The notes under the pieces: model-generated
Told to the model about the DNA's origin: nothing
What the model saw: the letters and a program-made list of their open reading frames with translations, nothing else
Database searches by the model: none
NCBI GenBank assembly: GCA_943704425.1
Contig: CALSCP010002369.1
Span: 1 to 34,210, forward strand
Length of the DNA: 34,210 nucleotides
Source of the DNA: Ministeria vibrans ATCC 50519
Lineage: Eukaryota; Protista; Filasterea
Direction: 5' to 3'
Position numbers and translations under genes: made by a program
Part shown: piece after piece, positions 2,478-17,800 of the stretch
Position numbering within the stretch: position 1 is the first letter of the stretch
Layout of the letters: the number at the start of each line of letters is the position of its first letter

Positions 2478-2924
2478 CCTATGGAATGCTGATGTTTTGT
2501 TTTTTATTGGATATAGAGGGTAGGGGATGGGGATAACAAAACATAACACTAACTCGTTGTCGCATTTCTCGACTGAAGAGTGTCTTTATAGAAGTCGGAC
2601 GGACGGTGAAGGTTGTTTTGATGATTTGTACGACCAAGTCAGAAAATACGTAAAATCATAAATACTCAGAAGGAGAAGAAGAATGGAACCCGTTTATTAC
2701 CGTTACAGTGAGTTAACAGTCACCACAGTCAAATTTACTATTGTAATAAGTAAAAGTAAATAATGCAACGAAGGCCAACTCTGCGAAGATGAAGCTCCCA
2801 TAAACGAATACCCAAAAAGTCAATAGATCATTCGTCATAGCCCATAGGACATAGGACATAGATTCATAAATACGCTCTTACAGCGAGCGTACAAAAAGGA
2901 ATCAGTGAATTAGTGAAAAAAGAG

Positions 2925-3003
2925 AAAATAATAATAATAAATAATAGAAGAAGAAGAATACAACCCAATAATAAATAATAAATTAATATAATAATTATTA
3001 TTA

Positions 3004-3039
<36 letters not shown>

Positions 3040-3102
3040 CATTCAATCAGAAAAATATTCAAAATATTTAATATCAGAATAATTAATTAATTAATATTTA
3101 AT
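2925..3102. repeat. AT-rich low-complexity tract with (AAT)n/(ATT)n microsatellite
   Basis: (ATT)n at about 3007-3040 and (AAT)n at about 2928-2980; almost no G/C. Confidence 0.85.
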
Positions 3103-3494
3103 TTCCTCGCCGAGCTTCTCTCATCGGTAGGCAATTTAGAACCTACCCACATCTCCCACGCAAAACACCCACACAAAAAAAAGAGCCAAAAGAGGAAAAC
3201 CATTTCGTTCGCGAATTTTCCTCTCATTTTCGTTTCACACCAGAGAAAACCGCCTCTTTCTTTGCACGTCTTCTTGCCATAGCGCCGCACTCTAGCCGAA
3301 ACTAGACGTGTGGGCATGCGAGGCGCTCTTTACTACTGCGATATTTTATCTACACGTGTCGAGCAAAAAAGCACTGACAAAAAAAAATATTCTTCTCTCG
3401 CAGCTCATTACGAGGCTTCTCCTCTTCGACTTTCTCTTTTGAGTGACTCCCTGGCCCAGAAGTTTCCGAGATTCCGGTGGCAACTCTCAGCGAA

Positions 3495-6400
3495 ATGCCG
3501 CGCAAAGCGGCCGAACCGACGGTTGAGGTTCAGTCGGTGCCTCCTCCGCCGCCTTCCTTTGCCAAACCCAGCGCGACCGTCGCTTCCTCGTCCCCAGGAG
3601 GCGCTCCACCGCCCATGGCGTATGCTGCAGCCGCAGCTTCAGGTCTTGCCAATGACCTGAAAAAACTTGACATCAGCGCATCGTCGTTGTCGTCGTCGTC
3701 GTCGTCGTCGCCATCGCCCTCTGCCACGACGCCCCCGCCCGTCAGTGTCAACGGGGCGTCGTCGCCGACACCCGCCACACCTGCTACTGCTCCATCATCA
3801 TCATCATCATCAGAAGCAGCAGCAGCAGCAGCAGCAGCAGCAACCAATGCAGCAGCAACGGCTGTAGCCAGTGACAGCAGCCCCAATGTAGACCATTCTT
3901 CGCTCTTTACGACGACCGCTGCTCTTAGTCCGACTCCCGCGTCACGTTCGAGGGCACGCACGTCGTCGTCACCGTCCAAGGGACCTCTGTCGCTCTCGTC
4001 GTCACAGGCAACGTGGAAGTGCAATTCGGAAATCAACGCGATGGCGCAGGCCGGTCGCGTTGACGAGGCACTTGCAATGCTCGGGCGAATGGAGGCAGAA
4101 GCACGCGCGGGCAACAGTGATATTGCGCCGGACACGGTCACATTCACGAGTGTCATCAAGGCGTGCGCCAAGACAGGCCGTGTCGACGAGGCACTGAGCA
4201 TCCTTGAGCGCATGGAGAAGGAGGCGGAGGCAGGTCGGCACGAAGTCGCACCCGACACCATCACGTTCACAACGGTCATCAAGGCGTGCGCCACGGCTGG
4301 TCGTGTCGAGAACGCGCTCACGCTTCTTATGCGCATGGAGCAGCTGGCCGAATCGGGTCGCAAGGACGTCGCACCCAACACGGTCACGTACAACTCAGTC
4401 ATCAACGCCTGTGCCCAGACAGGTCATGCCGACGAAGCCATGCGGGTCCTGCAGCAAATGGAAGACTCGTTGCGCGCGGGAAACGAACAGGTTGCGCCCG
4501 ACACGGTTACGTACAATTCGGTAATTAAGGCTTTTGCGCAGGCAGGTCGCGCCGAGCAGGCATTGTCCATGTTGCGCCGCATGGAGGTCGAGTCGACGAC
4601 GGGCGGTCGACCCGAGCTTGCCCCCAACACCGTCACCTTCTCGTCCGTCATCAATGCTATGGCACGCGCGTCGCTTGCAAACGAAGCGGTGCAGGTGCTC
4701 GAACATATGGAGCGCGAGGCGAGCTCGGGCCACCGCGAGATTGCACCCAATACGGTCACGTACAATGCAGTGATCAAGGCGTGTGCCAAAGCGGGCCAGA
4801 TCGACCGGGCTCTTGAGGTGCTGGGCACCATGGAGACGGCAGCGCGTAGCGGCCGCCATGAAGTTGCCCCCGACACCGTCTCGTACTCGACGGTGCTCAA
4901 GTCGCTCGCGCAAAAGGGCTGTGTCGACGAGGCACTCGTCGTGCTAGGGCGCATGGAGGCGTCGGGACGTCGTGAGGTTGCGCCCGACACGGTCACGTTC
5001 AATTCGGTGATCAATGCATTTGCGCAGGCCGGTCGTGTTGACGATGCCATGGACATGCTTGAGCGAATGGAGCGTGACGGACGTCTGCTTGTTGCCCCCG
5101 ACACTGTCACGTTCTCGTCGGTGATCAAGGCGTGTGCACAGACAGGTCGAGTCGACGACGCTCTTAAGGTTCTGGATCGTATGGAGAAGGAGGCAGCCAG
5201 CGGTCGACGTGAAGTCGCGCCCAACACGGTCACTTTTTCGTCGGTTATCGACGCCTGTGCCCAGGCCGGTCGTGTCGAGGAGGCACTGTCGCTGCTGGAT
5301 CGCATGGAGCGCGAAGCAGCCAACGGCCGCAACGAGGTCGCGCCCAACACGGTCACGTTCAACTCGGTGATCAATGCCTGTGCGCAAAAGGGCCGTGTCG
5401 AGGACGCCATGCGTGTGCTCAAGCGTATGGAGGCGAGCAAACGCCAGGATGTATCGCCCGACACGGTCACACTCACCAGTGTGATCAAAGCGTGTGCGCA
5501 CGCGGGTCGTGTCGAGGACGCCGTGTCAGTGCTGAGTCGCATGGAGACGGCAGCGTCGTCTGGCCGACAGAAGATGGCGCCCAACACGGTTACGTACAAC
5601 TCGGTCATCAATGCCATGGCGCAGGCGGGCCTCGCCGAGGAAGCCATGCAGGTGCTGGAGCGCATGGAAAAGGAGGCGGCTAATGGACGTCCTGAGGTCG
5701 CACCCGACACGGTCACCTACTCGTCGGTGATCAAGGCGTGCGCTCAGGCGGGCCGTGTCGAGGAGGCCATGTGGGTGCTTGCGCGCATGGAGATGGAGTG
5801 TGCTCTGGGCGGTCGTCAGCAAGTCGCGCCCGACACGGTCACGTTCAACTCGGTCATCAACGCCTGTGCCCAGGCCGGTCGTGTCGACGATGCTGTGTCC
5901 GTGCTCGAGCGTATGCAGCGTGCCGCCAACAGCGGTCGACGCAACGTCTGTCCCGACACCGTCACCTACTCGTCGGTCATCAATGCCTGTGCTAAAGCAC
6001 CCCGTCCTTCTCTCGACACTGTCGAGCGCATGTTTGAGATTTTCCGTCGTCTCCCAGCCGAGCAGCGCAACGAGCGCACCTATACGGCCATGATCAAGGC
6101 TCTGGGACGTGTCGGACGTGTCCAGGAGGCGGTGGGCCTGCTTGACGAAGACATCTCGCCCAACGTGTTTATGTACAACACTGCCATTGGAGCGGTGGTC
6201 AACGATCGGCGCACAAGTCCTGCCGAGAAGCAGTCGTTGGTGTGGTCTCTCTATGAGCGTATGCTGCGTGCTCAGGTTGCTCCCAACGAGTTTACTGCTA
6301 ACTACGTGCGCAAGGTTGGCATTGATCCAGGTCCCATTGGTGGTGGTGGAGGCGGCGGCGGTGGCAGTACCGGCGGTGGTGGGGGCAGTGACTACTCCGC

Positions 6401-8045: not shown

Positions 8046-10469
8046 TTAAAAAAAGCCTGTTTTGTGGATGTCCTCGAGCGGACACGCCTGCTCGTGGGTT
8101 GAGCTCAGACTGAGGCAGAAGCACTTGAGAAAGGCGGCCACTTTGTTTTTCCGCAAATTGTGCACTACGTCGTTGGGCAAGCGCGCAAAGGTGTCGACGC
8201 ACAGCAGAGACGGGCAGTCGGCAAACACACTGGCGGAGCGACCAAGAACGTGGCTTAAGATGTCCGGCCAGCGCTCTTTCATGTCTGTAGAGAAAGAAAA
8301 AAAAGAAAGATTTGCCATGAATTGGGAATTTATTAAGAAAAGGGTTTAAACCGCATTACCGCGAACTCCGACGTAGAACGAGTCAATGCAGAGCTTTTTG
8401 TTGCCGTAGAGTAAGCGAATGGTGAGGAGTGCACAGTGCTCCTCGGGTGCCAACGCGTTGGGGACGATCAGATCGAAGGTGTGCCGGAAGGAGCCAACTT
8501 TGACCCAGGCAGTGCTGACAAGCGTTTTGGTGGGGATCGAGTTGAAGGCAAGGTGCACCTGAGCATAGGTGTTGTCGAGAGGTTCGGCAAAGTAGGTGTT
8601 GAGGGAGACGCGAAGGATCACCGACGTGTTCGTGGCAGAGGGCACACGGAAGCTTGTCACGACCAGTTGCTTGCGACCGGCCGGTTCGGGTTTCAGACCG
8701 GAAATGGGTGGCTCTGGGGAGGCGCTTGGCACCAGCGCAAAGCTGACGGTTTGTTGTGAGGTGCGGGCAAGTGAAATGTGCGAAGCGCGCCACGGGAACT
8801 CAAAAGACTGGCCGTGTCGGCCAAGGGACGCCCAGACTTCAAGCACACTCGTTTCGGTGTCGCAGGTGTCGCTGGAACAGTACGAAGACAATGGCAGTTC
8901 CATCGCACGTTCAGAAAAGAAAGGGGAAAGAGAATCTGAAACAGGAGTGCCGGAGGGGAGTGAGGAAGTGTCGGACGCGGGTGTGAACGTGGGTGAGGTA
9001 GATGCGAGGGCACAGTCGGCCGGAGTTGCTGGTGTAGGTGTCTCGAGTGAGGTAGATGCGGGAGTTGCCGGCGTGACAGCCGATGATGAAGGTGGCGGAG
9101 AAACACTTTCGAGGGAGGAAGAAGGAGCTGTGGCAAGAGGTGAAGCCAGAGGTGAGCTTTCGGTGGAGGATGCGGATGAAGCAGTGTCTCTGTGCGCGGC
9201 TGGTGTGACAGCTGCTTGAAAGTGTGTTGCGGCGAAGCGTAGAACTTTGTACTCGTTGCTTTGGTTGACAGCTCGCACGCACAGGTACAAATCGAAGCCT
9301 TGATCGAAGAACATTTGACACTGAGACTCCTCAACACCAAAAAGAAGGGTGGCAGCAGAGGTGCCGTTGTCGGTGGTCGTGGGCGCACAGGTCCGAATGC
9401 GAATGTCCAGCGCATGCACTGCGCCAATGACACTTGCACCAGTCCCTCCACCACTTTGGAGAGCACCAGAACAAGATGGCGCAGCTGACAGAACCCACCG
9501 TGTTTCCGGCATCTGATGCACAGCGCGAGGGCTAGCACTTGGAGCGTCGCTCAGGGTTTCGGCAAACCTAAACCACCACTCGCGATCCTGAGAATTTATT
9601 GTGGGTGGATACTGAATGAGGTAGTTGGCTGGCGCGGAGAGGTCAATGGGAACGCACTTGAGGGAGAGAAAGGGCTGCGTATCCAATTGGAAGTTGGCTG
9701 AGTCGTACGTTTCGCAGTAGCTGTACTGAGTGCAAAAAAAAGCATTGCCGGAACATGGCTCGCATGCAATATCTTGCACACATATAAGACTATCTGCAAG
9801 ATACAGAGGCACAAATCGGCTGAGCGGCAAATTGACTCCCATTTCAAAGAATACTCCGACTCCGTTTGCGTGCTTTGTCGAGTCGTCGGGCACGCGCGAC
9901 CGACTTTGGCGAACGGGGACCATCACAATTGTTGTCATGCCCCCAGCGTAGCCGTCATCGTACACTGTAACTTCTGCTGGCACAAAGCGGAAGGGCGACC
10001 GTCGTGGGACGGGCCGCGTATCCCTGTGCAGCGGAGGTTTGTGCTTCAGGATCAAAATGGGACCAATTTCAAACTCTTCCTTAGCAAAAGGCTCAATGAC
10101 TTCAATGGTCCTCAGCGGGCCAAACTTCAAGGACCTCCTCTCCGCCTCTGCGTGCAGCCAGCAAGTCCATCGTGTCTCCCACACATTGAATTTGTTATGG
10201 TACATTGCCGCATACGGAAACGACACTTTGACGGTTCCTCCACCGTTCACAACACGCACACACATCTTGGGACACGTCGAGCGCCCCCCCGTCGAGAGCA
10301 ATCGCGACGGGCACGTGCGGAACTCGTCATCTGCGAGATTCTCCTCCCCAAGTCGAAAATCGTTCAGGTCCGCATCTTTTTCTGCAAGCGCGAGGCTGAC
10401 CGTGGCATCCAGTGACGTGCCAAACTCTACCACGGCCCCGTTAGGGAAGCAGGTGCGCGTCGCAAGCAT
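8046..10469 (-). CDS. Hypothetical protein, about 782 aa, 2 coding exons, Ser/Pro/Thr-rich middle, no family recognised
   Basis: 707-codon ORF. Donor CG|GTAATG at 8359 and acceptor TTTCTCTACAG at 8285 join it in frame to 8284-8046 (DMKERWPDIL...). A perfect CAG|GTAAGT at about 10690-10698 (-) with downstream pyrimidine-rich acceptors suggests a 5'-UTR intron. Confidence 0.7.
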
Positions 10470-10941
10470 TTAAATTTACGATTCCACTTCTTCGTTCCTT
10501 CTCCCCTCAAAAAGAAGTTGAAGAACAGTTAGAACACAGGCGAGAAGAGGGAGCGGTGCAGTAGTGACCCCGTAAACTGCTCGTGACAAGACAACACCAG
10601 ATAAATACTGAAGAAGAAGAAGAAGACAAATAAATACTGTTTACTGTCCAAACGCGATCAAACTTTTGACGTGGCGCCAGAAAACCCGAAACTTACCTGA
10701 TAGGGCACTTCCCGTACTGGCTCACTAAAGTACGCAGCTACTAGCGTAACTAGATCGATGTTAGAAACGCCCCGCCTAGTCGGGCACTGCCGATTCGTCC
10801 GCACTCGCTGGTTTGTTTGGAAGTTCGTTTATTTATTTTTTCGACTAAAATAAGGACCCTTTAGGACTTATTGAGGCGACTCAAAAACTGAAACTGTCAA
10901 AATATTTCTATTATTTCACAATTTTCCTCCTTCTCTCCCGC

Positions 10942-13900
10942 ATGCCTTCCAATCAGGGGTCTTATAGGGCTGTCTCTGTGGATGATGTCCACTCCTCACG
11001 CCACTGGGTCCTGGACAGGATGCGCCAATGCGATTGGGCCATTCCCGATCAGTGTGAACGGGAAAGCCCACTCGTTGTGACCAATTCGTCCGCCATCGAG
11101 ACGTGCTTCCCGTCGGCACCCACAACACCTGGGACAAACTCCTTTGCAGCCTTCTGCGCCTTCAACGAAGCCGAAATCGCTGGCGGTCGTGTTGAGCGCG
11201 ACAAAGCGGAAGAGACGGTCGACAACGGCGAAACTTTAGCGACTCTCCGCGAAGCAGTCGAAAACCCGCTCGACGGCTGGCAAGGCTGGCTAAACGCGCA
11301 CACAATCTTCTCATCCTATCTGCCGCGGAGCGTATTCCGCTCTCTGGGACTCGACGGGATGCCTCGAACGCATTTCTTGCTCCTCGATTTCACCTTTGAG
11401 GAGTCGGGCGGTCAATATGCGCACATTGAGAGCGCCGTGCAGCACATCGGGTTTCTCACCTATGCGTCTGTTTTGAAAACTCCAAAGTGGTCCGCGAGTG
11501 AGCTGCGTGCTGCTCTGAAGCGGATTTTTGCGAATGTTCAAGAGCAGGTAACAAAATAAGAACAAAATAATAGTATGATAAGAATAATAATAATAATATT
11601 TTGATTTTCAATGTCATTCATACTGATGGTATGCCTCTGCTTGTGCACGTCTATCTCTCCCCAGGACACTTTGATTGCGATGGTTGTTGCGCATGGGAAA
11701 TTGTGCTGCGTAAGCGGCTGTACTCAGTGTCGCGGTCCCGTATCTCTCTGTGCCATTTGCGCGACGCATGTGAAGGCGTTTGGTGAGTGTCCCTCGTATG
11801 ACTTTGATCGAAGCATGCTTGCTGCGTCCGAGTGCACTCGCTGCCTTGCCGTTGGCAAGGAGCCCGTCATCGCCATTGGCAAGGAGGACCTTCATCGCTC
11901 CGAGCTGATTCGGATGTTCCGCTATGCGCCACAGTGCCGCGCCTCTAGGACACTGCTGACGTTTGTGGCGTGCAATGTGGGCATTGCGGTGTCCAATGAG
12001 TGTCTCGTGAGCCCAGCGGATGTGCACAAGAACGTAGAGTACTCACCACAAGAGCTGCGTGCAATTTCCAAGAACACCGGGATGATTGTGCTTTCCGCTG
12101 TGTGTGGTGACCAGAAGCTCAAGGTGAGGGACGCGCGAAAGTTTGTGGAATTCTTTGCGGAGGGTCTCACGGGTGCTGCAGACTTCTCGCTGGGGTGTCA
12201 CGTGACGCTATTGTCGTTGATCGCGTACCTCCGCAGCGAAATGTACCAGTACATGGGGTCACAGCGCGCGTTTGTGGCGCGGGCGGATGGCGGTGAGCTG
12301 TTGCACTATGCGCTCGCATGCGAGTCATTTCCGGCAGTCTCTTCTCGGCGTATCAGGGGTACGACAGAAGAGCAAATGCCAGTGGGCAGTGATTTGGTGC
12401 TTGCCACAACGAGAACACCGCAGCGCAACCTCAAGTTTGACTTCTTGCTCATTCTTGTGCCATTGTTTTGGGCCGCTCTTGTGTCTGTCATGCTGTGGCT
12501 CGTGTGGGGACGCTACGTTGTGGACGCGGCAAACTTGAGTAATACTCGTTCGGTGGAAGGCTACTTGCTGTTTCTTCTGCAATGCCTCGTGGGACTCTTT
12601 CAGTCCATCTCACTGCCTGGCCGATGGCGGTTGTCCTACGACGAGGCTGTTTGGTGCGTGCGTGAGTCAAAGGGCATGCGGGCGTCTCTCCATGTCATGC
12701 TGGTGACGGTGTGCCTGCTCTCGCTGGCTGTGTGTGTGCCCGCGTTTGTCCAGGGACAGCTGGTGGGTGTCCCCCGGGTGTTCTGGTGGTGGGGCGCGTT
12801 TACGGCTCCGAGTGGGCTCTTTGCGTTCTTGTTTGTGCGCTTCTTTGCGATTGCAATTGCCAAGGCCAAGCCCGTTGTCTCGCTTCCCATCGTCACCAAC
12901 GTGTCTACTCTGGCGCTCTATGCAGTTCGCTGGATGCTCATGGCGCCCACTCTGCTTGTGTTTGCCGATTCTTACGATTCACACCATGTGCACAACAGCG
13001 GGGGCTTCTACCTACTCCTTGTCCTGACCTTTCTTGCCTTCCCCCTTGTAATGTACTTCAATGTGGCGGACGTGCGGCACGATCCTCCTGAGCGGTTTCA
13101 AGAGGGCGCCACGGAGAGCATTCTGGCGGGCGTGTGTCTTGGGGCACTCATGGCGTGTCTACAGACAAGCGTTTTGTGGACCAATACGCCGATGACCACG
13201 CCCTTTGTTCCAATAACACTGTCGCTCTTGTGTGCCGCTGTGTTCTATGGGCTACACTCGCTCTATATGTGGTACAAGCAGCGTGGGATTGCACGACGTG
13301 CTTTTGTGCGTCAGTACGCAACGGAGTCGTGGTCGCGCCGCTCTGTGGCAGGGTACACGTGTCGTGGTGTGTTGTGGGGTGTGTTGGTGTGGACCTTTTT
13401 AGTGTTGGGTGTCATTTCGACGATTCTCCCTCGATTCGATAAGACTCGTGCGGTGGCTGACCGTGACACCTTTTACCACGTCACCAAGCTCGACGATCTT
13501 GTCTTTCGCTGGGCCATGGGGCTCTATCTGCCGTGGGGCCTGCTTGTAATGTGGCCGCAGCTGCGGCAACTGATCTTTCGCGGACAGCTTGCGTGGATGA
13601 GCCGGCGATTTGTGGCGTTTTGTGCGGAAAAATGGCGCGGAGACAACGCAAGGCGCCCCACGTTTTCTGCACTGACTGCACACGTTCAACACGAAGAGGG
13701 GGTTTCACCCCTTGAGGATCAAGTTATTTACGCCAATGTTGAGACTGTCTCTTTGTTATCAGCTGCCGACGACGGCTTGGACACTGTCGCAGCTGCGACA
13801 GAACGGGATCAGTGCGCTGCAAGTAGACTTGGCCCGCCTTTTGAGGCGGAGGACAATTGCGTTGTTGTGCGCCGCGAATGGGTGAGTGTTCTGGCGGGGA

Positions 13901-14094
13901 AGCTCTGCAATGTAATCTTTTGGGGCTATTTCAGCTTTCTAAGTAGGTTATATAAATTATTACGAGTTTACTCAAGGAAGTTAACTGAAACTCCTTTCTC
14001 TAAACAGCGCCGTGGGCCGATGCTGGTGACGGTCCTTATTTCATTATTCATCAACAAGGCTATGCTTTTGTTGGCTCTTTACTGCTTGGAGTGA
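10942..14094 (+). CDS. Caspase-like (clan CD, C14-like) domain fused to a multi-pass membrane domain
   Basis: Exon 10942-11547 (CAG|GTAACA) splices in phase 0 to 11665 (TCTCTCCCCAG|). The joined protein has DTLIAMVVAHG (His codon 11692) and RTLLTFVACNVG (Cys codon 11971), then about 10-11 hydrophobic helices. A probable in-frame intron lies at 13882-14007. Confidence 0.75.
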
Positions 14095-14586
14095 TACTTT
14101 ATTACGTGGCTCTTTCCAAGTGACTATGATAATGTTTTGGTTGTACAACTGTGAAAATCTGATTAATTATTAATTTTAGTAATGAGAAGAACATTATTAT
14201 TAAAATTAATTACGGATGTTATGAACGAAATTAGTTGATTGTTATATTATTGTGTGTATAAGGCCCACCACTTATTAGCCGAATAGCCGTATAATTCGAG
14301 TCTTTTTTGCAAGTGTATGTGTTTAATTGACGAGTGATTACTTCACACCTCCTTCTGATAAATATTAGGAGAAGAAGAAGATTACATCCCATTTATTAAT
14401 GATACAGTTATCACGCAAAGACACAGCCAGACCGCCTTGCAAACACAACCAAAACTCTAGAGGTAACATGGAAGAAGAGTGGCAGGTCAGAGTGCTGATA
14501 ATTATAACTCGAAGACGTATTATGTAAACAATATAAGTAATTAATATTGATCAATCAATCAATTCACACACATTTTCGAAGGGGCA

Positions 14587-14836
14587 ATGGCTACGGATGC
14601 CACTGAGGCAGTGGAAGCATTCATCCGCGCCCGGCGCATGTGCCTCCCGCCGCCAGCGTGCACCGCCGCCGAAGCCGTGACGTGTGCCTCGCCCGCGTCT
14701 CTTGCCGCTCTCCTCGTCTCCAGCGGCTTCGAGGACGTCTCGCTCTTGCCGGACCTCGACGCAGACGACCTTGAGGAAATGGGCATCCAGACACCGTCCG
14801 TCCGTCTTCTTCTCGTTGACAATTTTTCGGTTCGGA

Positions 14837-14884
<48 letters not shown>

Positions 14885-17800
14885 TTTTTTTTTGCGTTGT
14901 GTTGTTCTTCAGACGACCACTGCTGCCGTATGCGGCTCCTTCGCCCCCATTTCTCACTCTCTCCCCTCTCCTCTATCTATTATGCTGCTGTCTACCTGTC
15001 GATTGCGCCCCATGAGGCTCTCTTTGAGTTCATCGCGCGTCTTTTACGTTTTGTCCCCCTCTGATCGAAACAATCTCAAGTCTCTCTCTCGTTTCGCGCT
15101 GTTTTCTGGCGCTTTTGTCCCCTATCTTGCCCCGTCCCCGCTACCATGGGTACCCTTTGTGCGTGTGGACACCGGGAATCGGCCTATAAGCGGCGGCGTC
15201 TTTCCAACTCCGTCGTTTGATATCTTTTTTTTCTTCTCTTGTTAGAAACCACCCGTGCAGGACGACGAAGAGGGCCCCGGCAGCGACGCGTTAGTTGTCG
15301 AATCAACGGCTACCGACGAAGCTACCGATGGTGCGGTCGAGGCGTCTCCGCCTCCCCCAGCAGAGGACAAACGGCCTCTTTTGAAACCTGCTCTTGTGCG
15401 CCCGCCCATTTCAGGCAACAAGCCCACTCTTCGCCCAGTCGTGGCCGCCTCTAAGCCAGCACTCAGGCCCCAGGGTGCGAAGCCAGCCATTGCTGCAGCG
15501 ACTAAGCCCGCCATTGCAGCAGCAAAGCCTTCCATTGCCGCAGCAAAGCCTGCCATGACAGCCAAGCCAGCCATTGCAGCAACAAAGCCCAAGGTGGCTT
15601 CCCAACCACGTTCACAGCCTTCGCCTGTGCCATCAAACAGCAGTCCAGCTAGCGATAGTTCTTTAGCGAAAACGACAGCGAGCAGCGAAGGCAGCCCAAC
15701 TCGCAGTCAGGACACACGAAGTGCCTCGGTCTCACCTGTTGCTCCCAAACCGTCTCCAACGGCAGCCCCTCGCCCCCAGGCGGCCCCACGCCCAAGCGCA
15801 CGTCCTCGTCTTCCACCCACCAACACAACCATACCGCTACAAACGGCATCAGCGCCCGTCTCCATGTCTATTGACGACGAACTCGATGACCACAACAACG
15901 ACAACGACACGCCTCCACCCAAACCTAAACTTCCCTCCACTTTCACCCTCGACCCCCTTCCCACCCCCACCACCCCCACTGTCGTCATCCCACCCACTGC
16001 CGNNNNNNNNNNNNNNNNNNNNNNNNNNNNNNNNNNNNNNNNNNNNNNNNNNNNNNNNNNNNNNNNNNNNNNNNNNNNNNNNNNNNNNNNNNNNNNNNNN
16101 NNNNNNNNNNNNNNNNNNNNNNNNNNNNNNNNNNNNNNNNNNNNNNNNNNNNNNNNNNNNNNNNNNNNNNNNNNNNNNNNNNNNNNNNNNNNNNNNNNNN
16201 NNNNNNNNNNNNNNNNNNNNNNNNNNNNNNNNNNNNNNNNNNNNNNNNNNNNNNNNNNNNNNNNNNNNNNNNNNNNNNNNNNNNNNNNNNNNNNNNNNNN
16301 NNNNNNNNNNNNNNNNNNNNNNNNNNNNNNNNNNNNNNNNNNNNNNNNNNNNNNNNNNNNNNNNNNNNNNNNNNNNNNNNNNNNNNNNNNNNNNNNNNNN
16401 NNNNNNNNNNNNNNNNNNNNNNNNNNNNNNNNNNNNNNNNNNNNNNNNNNNNNNNNNNNNNNNNNNNNNNNNNNNNNNNNNNNNNNNNNNNNNNNNNNNN
16501 NNNNNNNNNNNNNNNNNNNNNNNNNNNNNNNNNNNNNNNNNNNNNNNNNNNNNNNNNNNNNNNNNNNNNNNNNNNNNNNNNNNNNNNNNNNNNNNNNNNN
16601 NNNNNNNNNNNNNNNNNNNNNNNNNNNNNNNNNNNNNNNNNNNNNNNNNNNNNNNNNNNNNNNNNNNNNNNNNNNNNNNNNNNNNNNNNNNNNNNNNNNN
16701 NNNNNNNNNNNNNNNNNNNNNNNNNNNNNNNNNNNNNNNNNNNNNNNNNNNNNNNNNNNNNNNNNNNNNNNNNNNNNNNNNNNNNNNNNNNNNNNNNNNN
16801 NNNNNNNNNNNNNNNNNNNNNNNNNNNNNNNNNNNNNNNNNNNNNNNNNNNNNNNNNNNNNNNNNNNNNNNNNNNNNNNNNNNNNNNNNNNNNNNNNNNN
16901 NNNNNNNNNNNNNNTTTGTTGTGTTTTCTCTGATTTTGTTGTGTTTTCTCTGATTTTGTTGTGTTTTCTCTGATTTTGTTGTGTTTTCTCTGATTTTGTT
17001 GTGTTTTCTCTGATTTTGTTGTGTTCTTTCTGATTTTGTTGTGTTTTCTCTGATTTTGTTGTGTTTTCTCTGATTTTGTTGTGTTCTCTCTGATTTTTGT
17101 TGTGTTTTCTCTGATTTTGTTGTGTTCTCTCTGATTTTTGTTGTGTTCTCTCTGATTTTTGTTGTGTTCTCTCTGATTTTGTTGTGTTCTCTCTGATTTT
17201 TGTTGTGTCAGGAGGTTCAACGAGGCGACGAGAGTGATTCGTACGAAGAGATTGATGTGGTGCTGGACAATGATGATTCGAGCAGTGTGTTCAGTTTGAG
17301 TTCGGCAAATGCGTCGCGGACTGGTCGCACGACGCCGAGTGTGCGCTCGAAGAAAGAGAGTAAGATTCTAAAAATTATTTTATTGTGACGTACTTGTATC
17401 CATGTCTGTCTGTGCATGACTCACTTTTTGTGTAGGTCGCGCTGACGACGAAGAGGATGAAGATGATGGTGAAGAAGACGATGACGATGAAGAAGGTTTG
17501 GGTCCAGTGATTGTGTCTCAAGAGCCACTGCCCACCGACGAAGTAACACACACTCACCCTTACCATCTCACTCACCCACATACATCCATTCTCTCTTACA
17601 GGGCATTGAAGACACCACCATGCGCGCTATTGCTGCTGCCAATGTGCGTGGAAATCTGTCCATGCAAGCCATTGGCGTCATTCGCTTTCTGGAGAGCATC
17701 AAAATGTCGCACCATGTCGACGCGTACGCCATTTCCTCTTTTGCAGGGTTTTCTTTTTCTTCTTCACGCTCCCCTTAATCCCGTTTCTCTTTAGGTTTCT

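Follow-up and report, generated by a model that had tools for sequence, protein, structure and literature searches.

The 34,210-nucleotide window of Ministeria vibrans contig CALSCP010002369.1, the whole stretch of DNA analysed here, contains on its forward (+) strand an expressed three-exon gene (10942-14123) encoding a protein of 999 amino acids. The evidence supports, at a level below the standard for family membership, a very divergent caspase/metacaspase fold (MEROPS C14, clan CD) predicted to run from about residue 143 of exon 1 to about residue 210 of exon 2. It is followed by a membrane domain that, by hydropathy, brings the protein to about 12 transmembrane helices. We consider it probable that the product of this expressed gene carries a divergent C14 fold and is a predicted cytosolic, membrane-tethered protease. 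The original prediction, made from the sequence of the window, had called such an architecture unfamiliar in eukaryotes, and the combination of a C14-like domain with about 12 transmembrane helices is indeed not described for eukaryotes in the literature searched.

Gene structure and expression

The program-made list of open reading frames contains two ORFs in a common reading frame, at 10942-11559 and 11611-14094. The coding part of exon 1 (10942-11547; 202 amino acids), which is single copy in a search of the organism's own genome, begins with the ATG at 10942, the first start codon in the transcript contigs, and is covered by them from 10931 or 10961 to 11544(+3). Intron 1 (11548-11664; 117 nt) is AT-rich, contains in-frame stops and a pyrimidine tract, and has GT..AG borders (gt at 11548-49, ag at 11663-64). 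It is absent from two RNA-derived contigs, X7 record 17 (3111 nt) and X9 record 23 (3078 nt), which derive from independent samples (depth 94.5 and 78.8, respectively), match the genome over 10931/10961-14217 with 0 mismatches and span the gene from its start codon into the 3' UTR, which extends to about 14217. The splice from 11547 to 11665 originally proposed to unite the two ORFs is therefore exact and in frame, and the RNA evidence across it that had been suggested as a check is present in both contigs. The alternative, in which each ORF is a gene of its own or the gene model results from an error of assembly or annotation, could appeal to the stop at 11557-59 that closes ORF 1, to the ATG at 11611 that opens ORF 2, and to one low-depth X20 contig that runs into intron 1 and has a loose end at 11599. 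The junctions in contigs from independent samples contradict it, and a stand-alone ORF 2 would start the His strand described below at residue 19 and would have no strand 1; we regard it as extremely improbable.

Exon 2 (11665-13942) comprises 759 complete codons, ends on the first base of a split one, and is covered by RNA contigs unbroken over 11662-13942. Intron 2 (13943-14007; 65 nt, GT..AG) is absent from the same X7 and X9 contigs, and an X20 loose end at 13942 continues into the start of exon 3, giving the same junction again. Because intron 2 is removed, the gene has a third exon (coding part 14008-14123), which completes the split codon (A in exon 2, CG in exon 3) and adds 37 amino acids, including the twelfth transmembrane segment (GYAFVGSLLLGVILYYVAL), before a tga stop at 14121-14123. 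The real C-terminus is thus not the one at 14094, where the protein had been predicted to end. Scans of the window for tRNA genes and Rfam families found nothing.

Evidence for a C14-like fold

All searches and folds were performed exon by exon. The C-terminal two thirds of the putative domain (11665-12294; exon-2 residues 1-210) present, in order, a His-Gly strand, a Cys-rich insert, a hairpin, a helix, a Cys strand, a linker, strand 5, two helices and a last strand, GGELLHY. A custom C14 HMM built from 41 sequences aligned exon-2 residues 86-204 with profile positions 170-290 (10.2 bits, i-E 4.3e-5). With residues 86-210 as the query the score was 15.2 bits, exceeded by none of 2000 shuffles, and with residues 1-250 it was 13.6 bits, against 2.3 for the best of 3000 shuffles and 9.5 for the best of 3000 block shuffles. 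Even residues 115-210 alone, which hold strand 5, the two helices and the last strand, scored 8.3 bits, a value reached by 0 of 2000 shuffles. When 301 ORFs from all loci and the window were scored, values above 5 bits were found in true C14 ORFs and this ORF only. The signal was obtained solely with a C14 profile broadened by bacterial sequences: neither a narrow HMM made from the genome's own C14 proteins nor hhalign against that profile gave a signal, and pairwise phmmer and BLAST comparisons with the same proteins detected no similarity.

Other comparisons arrive at the same register. Against A3, a C14 profile that itself matches MALT1, metacaspases and caspases in the PDB, hhalign returned 53.6% probability (P 1.3e-4) over 107 columns covering exon-2 residues 79-198. 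The MAFFT alignment A5 (25 rows, 24 of them homologues) is collinear through the last strand, where GGELLHY aligns with KGDFVF. Peptidase_C14 accounts for 28 of the 30 clusters nearest in the ESM Atlas, with a score of 0.93 and a shared feature count of 144, fewer than the 170 that true family members typically share. A separate MAFFT alignment with full-length homologues (A4) placed the first strand of exon 2 on family strand 1; this was rejected as an artefact arising because exon 1 was missing from the query, the position-specific scoring matrix (PSSM) and ESMFold2 both favouring the His strand.

The N-terminal part of the domain (11368-11547) is proposed to consist of the strand THFLLLDF (exon-1 residues 143-150) followed by a putative helix, strand and helix up to QEQ. 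Alignment-free ESMFold2 docked exon-1 residues 136-202 onto exon-2 residues 1-222 with ipSAE values of 0.69, 0.69 and 0.70 against 0.01 for the best of three controls, a pass that can stem from the model's memory of caspase p20/p10 complexes. Of 78 solved complexes, 51 attain this mark, as do 2 of 108 mismatched pairs. At least 75% of contacts recur across the three runs, the partner pLDDT is at least 54 and ESMFold2 pLDDT values span only 54-63, and THFLLLDF is modelled parallel to exon-2 residues 2-9, the His strand, as are beta1 and beta3 of the fold. Profile and block tests of the exon-1 half (strand 1, helix, strand 2, helix) were not significant (p 0.32), and the helix and GF assignments made there by the original prediction gain no support from them. 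Its broader claim, a caspase-like domain divided by the intron, fared better: the splice, the HMM and hhalign matches, the PSSM, the Atlas neighbours and the ESMFold2 strand HFLLLDF all favour it, and the thresholds of curated families are what it falls short of. AlphaFold2 from the single sequence gave a pLDDT of 30.7 and no usable fold. When AlphaFold2 was supplied with the C14 alignment, a structure search of the model returned a C14-fold match, which arises by construction because the model was built from that alignment.

Pfam PF00656 matched neither exon 1 nor exon 2, nor any of six sub-pieces, up to E 10; the C14-like domain lies below the PF00656 gathering score (21.4 bits), and the locus is not among the nine PF00656 matches in the genome. 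Searching the exons and sub-pieces against Pfam, NCBIfam and PADLOC yielded only Arg_decarbox_C and DUF5957, rejected as sub-threshold noise. A PDB sequence search found no match, exon 2 retrieved zero homologues in a billion-scale protein search and in phmmer against 1.84 billion representatives, and scans of metagenomes and viral contigs found no relatives. By these searches the protein is an orphan in the sense that it has no relative outside this genome and its near kin, a circle whose records the collections may omit. Within the genome, a scan with profile A3 recovered at least 90 C14-like loci, many of them within ORFs of 600-2000 amino acids. The gene at 10942-14123 is absent from these matches and is the only C14-like locus that the genome-wide profile scan fails to recover.

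Putative active site

The peptide elements quoted in the original prediction are all found where it had placed them, and both residues that it had described as intact now fall on catalytic columns. The putative catalytic His is exon-2 His10 (11692-11694), in DTLIAMVVAHG. A PSSM for the His-Gly block scored DTLIAMVVAHGK at 10.2 bits, at exon-2 position 1 and rank 1 of 748; none of 4404 decoy positions reached that score, and the per-position chance is 8.4e-5. His10 and Gly11 correspond to invariant columns of A5, where core strand 3 ends. The putative catalytic Cys is exon-2 Cys103 (11971-11973), in LLTFVACNVG, which HMM, hhalign and MAFFT alike align with hvlvilDaCfSG, so that Cys103 occupies the catalytic column, the C of DaCfSG. 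At 11.5 bits, the Cys block outscores every decoy. His-Gly after strand 3 and Cys after strand 4 would form a putative catalytic dyad.

The surroundings of the dyad depart from those of known families. The pentapeptide of Asp-specific C14 caspases is of the QACRG type. The Q-A-C-x-G pattern of animal caspases is replaced here by V-A-C-N-V, and because QACRG has become VACNVG, Asp specificity is not expected, as had been anticipated. The Asp of the D-x-C motif, which at least 90% of the 25 A5 rows share, is Val101 in the query, so the acidic S1 feature of the metacaspase/orthocaspase subtype is missing too. An insert of about 50 residues after His-Gly (11701-11847) contains nine Cys (exon-2 C14, 15, 19, 22, 29, 32, 42, 57 and 60), including three CxxC pairs. 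It is missing in all 24 aligned homologues of A5 and has low pLDDT in the AlphaFold2 model; it is a possible metal or redox module. Since the S1 Asp is missing and the insert adjoins the His, the C14-like domain may be inactive.

Membrane domain and topology

The polytopic membrane domain (12442-13941; exon-2 residues 260-759) contains 11 hydrophobic segments by hydropathy, to which exon 3 adds one. A multi-pass domain after the protease part was correctly predicted; its count of about 10-11 helices is revised to about 12. The loops on the N-terminal side contain 24 Lys and Arg, against 8 on the opposite side, and hydropathy reveals no N-terminal signal-like segment. A 105-residue loop of exon 2 (residues 633-737; 13561-13875) is predicted to lie on the cytosolic side. 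The C14-like domain would likewise be cytosolic, joined by a linker of about 45 residues to the 12 membrane helices. Pfam, NCBIfam and PADLOC searches of the membrane domain gave no family match, and it has no internal repeat. Among the ESM Atlas neighbours of exon 2, the vertebrate TMEM168 family, multi-pass proteins of similar length, takes rank 13 (0.82, with 129 of 256 features in common), only a language-model lead that lies below 0.9.

Comparison with known C14 and clan CD proteins

To our knowledge, descriptions of caspase homologues from non-animal organisms present them as soluble proteins. Animal caspases, c-FLIP and the MALT1 paracaspase are also soluble, and unlike them the query lacks QACxG and death-fold or Ig partners. 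It shows no sign of the Arg of the Asp pocket of animal caspases, the Arg positions being not mappable, and its structural match to these proteins follows from the alignment on which the model was built.

Among the closest known proteins are metacaspase-like proteases and orthocaspases (MEROPS C14B, p20-type, with accessory domains), which share the hydrophobic strand ending in His-Gly and then a core strand ending in x-A-C-x-x-G. Also collinear with them are a later strand, a pair of helices, the last strand (Q...G-[DE]-hydrophobic) and the AD..G..T loop. The query differs from them in falling below the Pfam threshold, in having Val for the DxC Asp and in its nine-Cys insert of 50 residues after the His. 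Orthocaspases carry an accessory domain C-terminal to the protease domain, as does the query (PMC5756287). Cyanobacterial orthocaspases have one or at most two transmembrane helices, in contrast to the 12-helix partner found here (PMC8283722). Reports of extra domains on non-animal caspase homologues come from bacteria, and for algal metacaspase-like proteins a p20 domain alone is described (PMC5756287). Two other clan CD arrangements are distinct: the GPI transamidase subunit PIGK/GPI8 (C13) is single-pass and faces the ER lumen, with the polytopic helices in other subunits, and DdvA (PDB 8rot) is a bacterial transmembrane anti-sigma factor of other architecture, with a single transmembrane helix and a CHAT domain.

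Proposed function and alternatives

The functions suggested in the original prediction (a receptor-protease, a self-activating channel or a death effector) are speculative. The protein may be a putative membrane-resident cysteine protease whose activity the membrane domain, and perhaps also the nine-Cys insert, would gate. Its targets would be membrane-proximal or cytosolic proteins or the protein itself, cut at a P1 residue that is neither Asp, since QACRG is absent, nor Arg/Lys, since the DxC Asp is Val, and it would serve as an additional output module of the genome's large, fusion-prone C14-like repertoire. More specifically, we tentatively propose a membrane sensor-protease, a possible reading in which the 12-helix domain, possibly together with the insert, detects a membrane, ion or stress signal and activates the caspase-fold domain, with its non-Asp, non-basic P1 preference.

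The same features can be read differently. Pseudoprotease domains of this kind include c-FLIP, the Raptor N-domain and inactive ortho- and metacaspases. The C14-like fold could likewise be a pseudoprotease with a regulatory, scaffolding or substrate-holding role, the real activity (transport or sensing) lying in the 12-helix domain. The replacement of the nearly invariant DxC Asp by Val101, the lack of the caspase Gln/Arg pattern and the large Cys-rich insert next to the His all fit this account, as does the extreme divergence of the only C14-like locus missed by the genome-wide profile scan; pseudo-variants are also frequent in the family (PMC5756287, PMC6426788). Against it, both dyad residues are retained at canonical strand ends, albeit in this single sequence, which has no orthologues, whereas described pseudo-orthocaspases usually replace the dyad, with His/Cys becoming Tyr/Ser (PMC6426788). 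We judge it rather unlikely. A chance resemblance, in which the N-terminal 450 residues form an unrelated alpha/beta domain, or a novel one, in which strand-HG and strand-AC motifs occur by accident, would explain the blank in every curated library and in 1.84 billion representatives, an hhalign probability of just 54%, an Atlas feature count short of the typical value and an exon 1 that profiles do not support. It is improbable given that five kinds of test (HMM with shuffles and decoys, hhalign, the His-Gly PSSM, Atlas neighbours and ESMFold2) give one collinear register.

If the preferred reading of a divergent C14 fold is correct, a caspase-fold domain within a 12-helix membrane protein would represent a new coupling of membrane events to proteolysis, made more interesting by its altered S1 pocket and by the Cys-rich insert that lies at the active site. 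Curated family models overlook C14-like copies this divergent. The gene would extend the picture of a genome in which C14-like domains have multiplied (at least 90 loci) and combined with many partners, reminiscent of immune and cell-death receptors. Should the sensor-protease reading also be true, the protein would be the first eukaryotic C14 protease with a polytopic membrane domain, and would belong to an immune or cell-death-like repertoire made of C14 fusions.

Gene structure and transcription

The ORFs at 10942-11559 and 11611-14094 on the forward strand share a common reading frame, and the AT-rich stretch between them is bordered by a gt (11548-49) and by a pyrimidine tract followed by ag (11663-64). 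The original prediction joined them by a splice from 11547 to 11665. When contigs from four sequencing runs were compared with 10400-14600, this exact junction was present in two long contigs from different samples, record 17 of run X7 (3111 nt, depth 94.5) and record 23 of run X9 (3078 nt, depth 78.8), both of which skip the same 117 nt with GT..AG borders. Both also skip a second GT..AG intron of 65 nt (13943-14007), and a loose end from a further run, X20, carries the same junction. The locus is present in runs labelled 'algae metagenome' and 'seawater metagenome'; since the X7 and X9 contigs are without introns, they are mRNA-derived.

The gene therefore has three exons, all on the forward strand and all taken from RNA-derived contigs: exon 1 at 10942-11547 (202 residues), exon 2 at 11665-13942 (759 residues and the start of a split codon) and exon 3 at 14008-14123 (37 residues after the split codon). 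These are separated by introns at 11548-11664 and 13943-14007, absent from both long contigs, and encode 999 residues (202 + 759 + 1 + 37). Intron 2 changes the frame, and the actual C-terminus is T-PWADAGDGPYFIIHQQGYAFVGSLLLGVILYYVALSK, giving one extra hydrophobic helix. The RNA junctions thus bear out the predicted joining of the two ORFs; the proposed C-terminus at 14094 is replaced by the third exon. The X9 contig has 21 loose letters before 10931, where the genome has no AG acceptor; these could come from a non-coding exon further upstream, from a leader or from a contig artefact.

Genomic setting

The window is eukaryotic, with neighbours encoding a PPR array, an F-box/ankyrin protein, an attractin-like Kelch/EGF protein and a REJ-domain protein, and the genome comprises 29.7 Mb in 2860 contigs. 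The minus-strand neighbour (8346-10570) encodes an orphan 707-aa protein and is transcribed divergently from the caspase-like gene; its RNA contigs stop at 10490-10570. This divergent arrangement, with 473 bp from ATG to ATG, suggests a common bidirectional promoter region. Downstream, at 14360-14500, lies a repeat some 130 bp long that is dispersed through the genome (266 first-look candidates; 43 copies scored, at 88-93% identity) and has no match in tRNA or Rfam scans. RNA contigs of all four runs stack on it with mismatches, and therefore reflect transcription of copies elsewhere. An assembly gap (16004-16914, a run of N) is directly followed by a 20-nt minisatellite (tttgttgtgttttctctgat) at 16915-17060.

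A probable, divergent C14-like domain

All searches and folds were run on the separate exons. Exon 2 had no match among 5.8 billion clustered proteins, in 1.84 billion representatives searched with phmmer, or in metagenome or viral contigs, and neither exon 1 nor exon 2 has a second copy in its own genome. From these searches, the protein is an orphan outside this genome and its close kin, whose records the collections may lack. A PF00656 scan of the genome returned nine other loci, the caspase-like gene not among them, and a narrow profile built from the genome's own C14 proteins did not match exon 2.

Forty-one sequences went into a broader C14 profile: 23 C14 domains of Bacteroidota detected by PF00656, seven from this genome and eleven database proteins. 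Its 32-sequence version, A3, matches MALT1 (8e-23), metacaspases and caspases in the PDB and is therefore a valid C14 profile. Run without any filter, the 41-sequence profile aligns exon-2 residues 86-204 with profile positions 170-290 (10.2 bits, i-E 4.3e-5), so that Cys103 meets the catalytic Cys of DaCfSG. For residues 1-250 the score is 13.6 bits, against at most 2.3 in 3000 shuffles and at most 9.5 in 3000 shuffles that keep local composition; residues 86-210 (15.2 bits) and 115-210 (8.3 bits) were each exceeded in 0/2000 shuffles. The profile was also compared with 301 ORFs of 120 aa or longer, drawn from the window and every retrieved locus; of these, none scored above 5 bits apart from true C14 ORFs (all at 22.7 bits or higher) and the exon-2 ORF (10.7 bits). 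Alignment of residues 1-250 to A3 with hhalign gave 53.6% probability (P 1.3e-4, 107 columns) in the same register as the HMM. Searches of Pfam, NCBIfam and PADLOC with the exons and their sub-pieces, and a sequence search of the PDB, assign no family.

Both catalytic residues had been predicted to be intact, and the alignments agree. In a His-Gly PSSM of twelve strand columns, DTLIAMVVAHGK ranks first of 748 exon-2 positions at 10.2 bits (per-position chance 8.4e-5 in shuffles; 0/4404 decoy positions as high). In a MAFFT alignment with 24 homologue fragments that begin at this strand (A5), His10 and Gly11 are invariant, Cys103 lies on the catalytic column, and the elements after it are collinear to the last strand (GGELLHY vs KGDFVF).

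Peptidase_C14 appears in 28 of the 30 nearest ESM Atlas clusters for residues 1-235 (score 0.93); according to the tool, 4-10% of shuffled proteins also score 0.9, and a count of 144 shared features is what distant relatives or chance would give. Single-sequence AF2 gave no usable model (pLDDT 30.7); with A5, AF2 reached pLDDT 64.5 (pTM 0.63), with strands and helices at the expected places. Foldseek matched this second model best to caspases, c-FLIP and MALT1 with weak E-values (0.013-0.4); since a C14 alignment went into the model, these matches show compatibility and not independent proof. Alignment-free ESMFold2 docked exon-1 residues 136-202 on exon-2 residues 1-222 (ipSAE 0.69, 0.69, 0.70; best of three controls 0.01), a mark reached by 51/78 solved complexes and 2/108 mismatched pairs. 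Contact agreement between runs was at least 75% and partner pLDDT at least 54. The closest contacts set T143-F150 (THFLLLDF), the predicted first strand, parallel to T2-A9 of the His strand, matching how strands 1 and 3 neighbour each other in the caspase sheet. This score could also arise from caspase p20/p10 complexes that ESMFold2 has learned; here, that would be the very likeness in question. The C14 profile tests gave no significant match for the exon-1 half, and an ordered-block test gave p 0.32, with helix WSASELRAALKRIFA the only block chosen as expected.

Taken together, the evidence for the caspase-fold reading is convergent but of moderate strength: the N-terminal part very likely has a C14-like fold, and this putative domain is probably an active protease. 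The caspase QACxG reads VACNV, in keeping with the prediction that Asp specificity is not expected. In metacaspase structures the DxC Asp belongs to the basic-P1 pocket; it is nearly invariant in A5 and is Val101 in exon 2, and from these motifs neither known specificity would be expected. Directly after His-Gly, an insert of about 50 aa, missing from all aligned homologues, carries nine Cys including three CxxC pairs; a zinc or redox module would be no more than a reasonable guess.

Membrane domain

By hydropathy, exon 2 has 11 hydrophobic segments, in line with the 10-11 helices predicted, and exon 3 has one, raising the total to 12; there is no N-terminal signal-like segment. With 24 Lys and Arg in N-terminal-side loops and 8 on the opposite side, the positive-inside rule predicts a cytosolic location for the protease-like domain, the 105-aa loop (residues 633-737) and the C-terminus. 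The membrane domain has no family match and no internal repeat on search; the vertebrate TMEM168 family is a weak language-model neighbour of exon 2 (0.82).

C14-like proteins in the genome

Accessory domains are described as confined to prokaryotic orthocaspases, algal metacaspase-like proteases having the p20 domain alone (PMC5756287). Transmembrane helices occur in 67/473 cyanobacterial orthocaspases, mostly singly and never more than two (PMC8283722), in contrast to the 12 hydrophobic segments here. None of the papers searched describes a polytopic C14 protein in eukaryotes. At C2636:2672-6484, a C14-like ORF of 344 aa is directly followed by an open frame (positions 2830-3813 of this locus) with about six hydrophobic segments that continues past the locus edge, possibly a second C14-plus-membrane arrangement.

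Profile A3 detects at least 90 loci in the genome (e.g. C2154:48402-49235, C883:47974-48819 and C2822:51809-52678), many as ORFs some 290 aa long and others within ORFs of 600-2000 aa. Many of the shorter ORFs have a hydrophobic N-terminal segment. For a genome of 30 Mb this expansion is very large. The caspase-like gene diverges most of all the C14-like loci found, being the only one that the genome profile scan misses.
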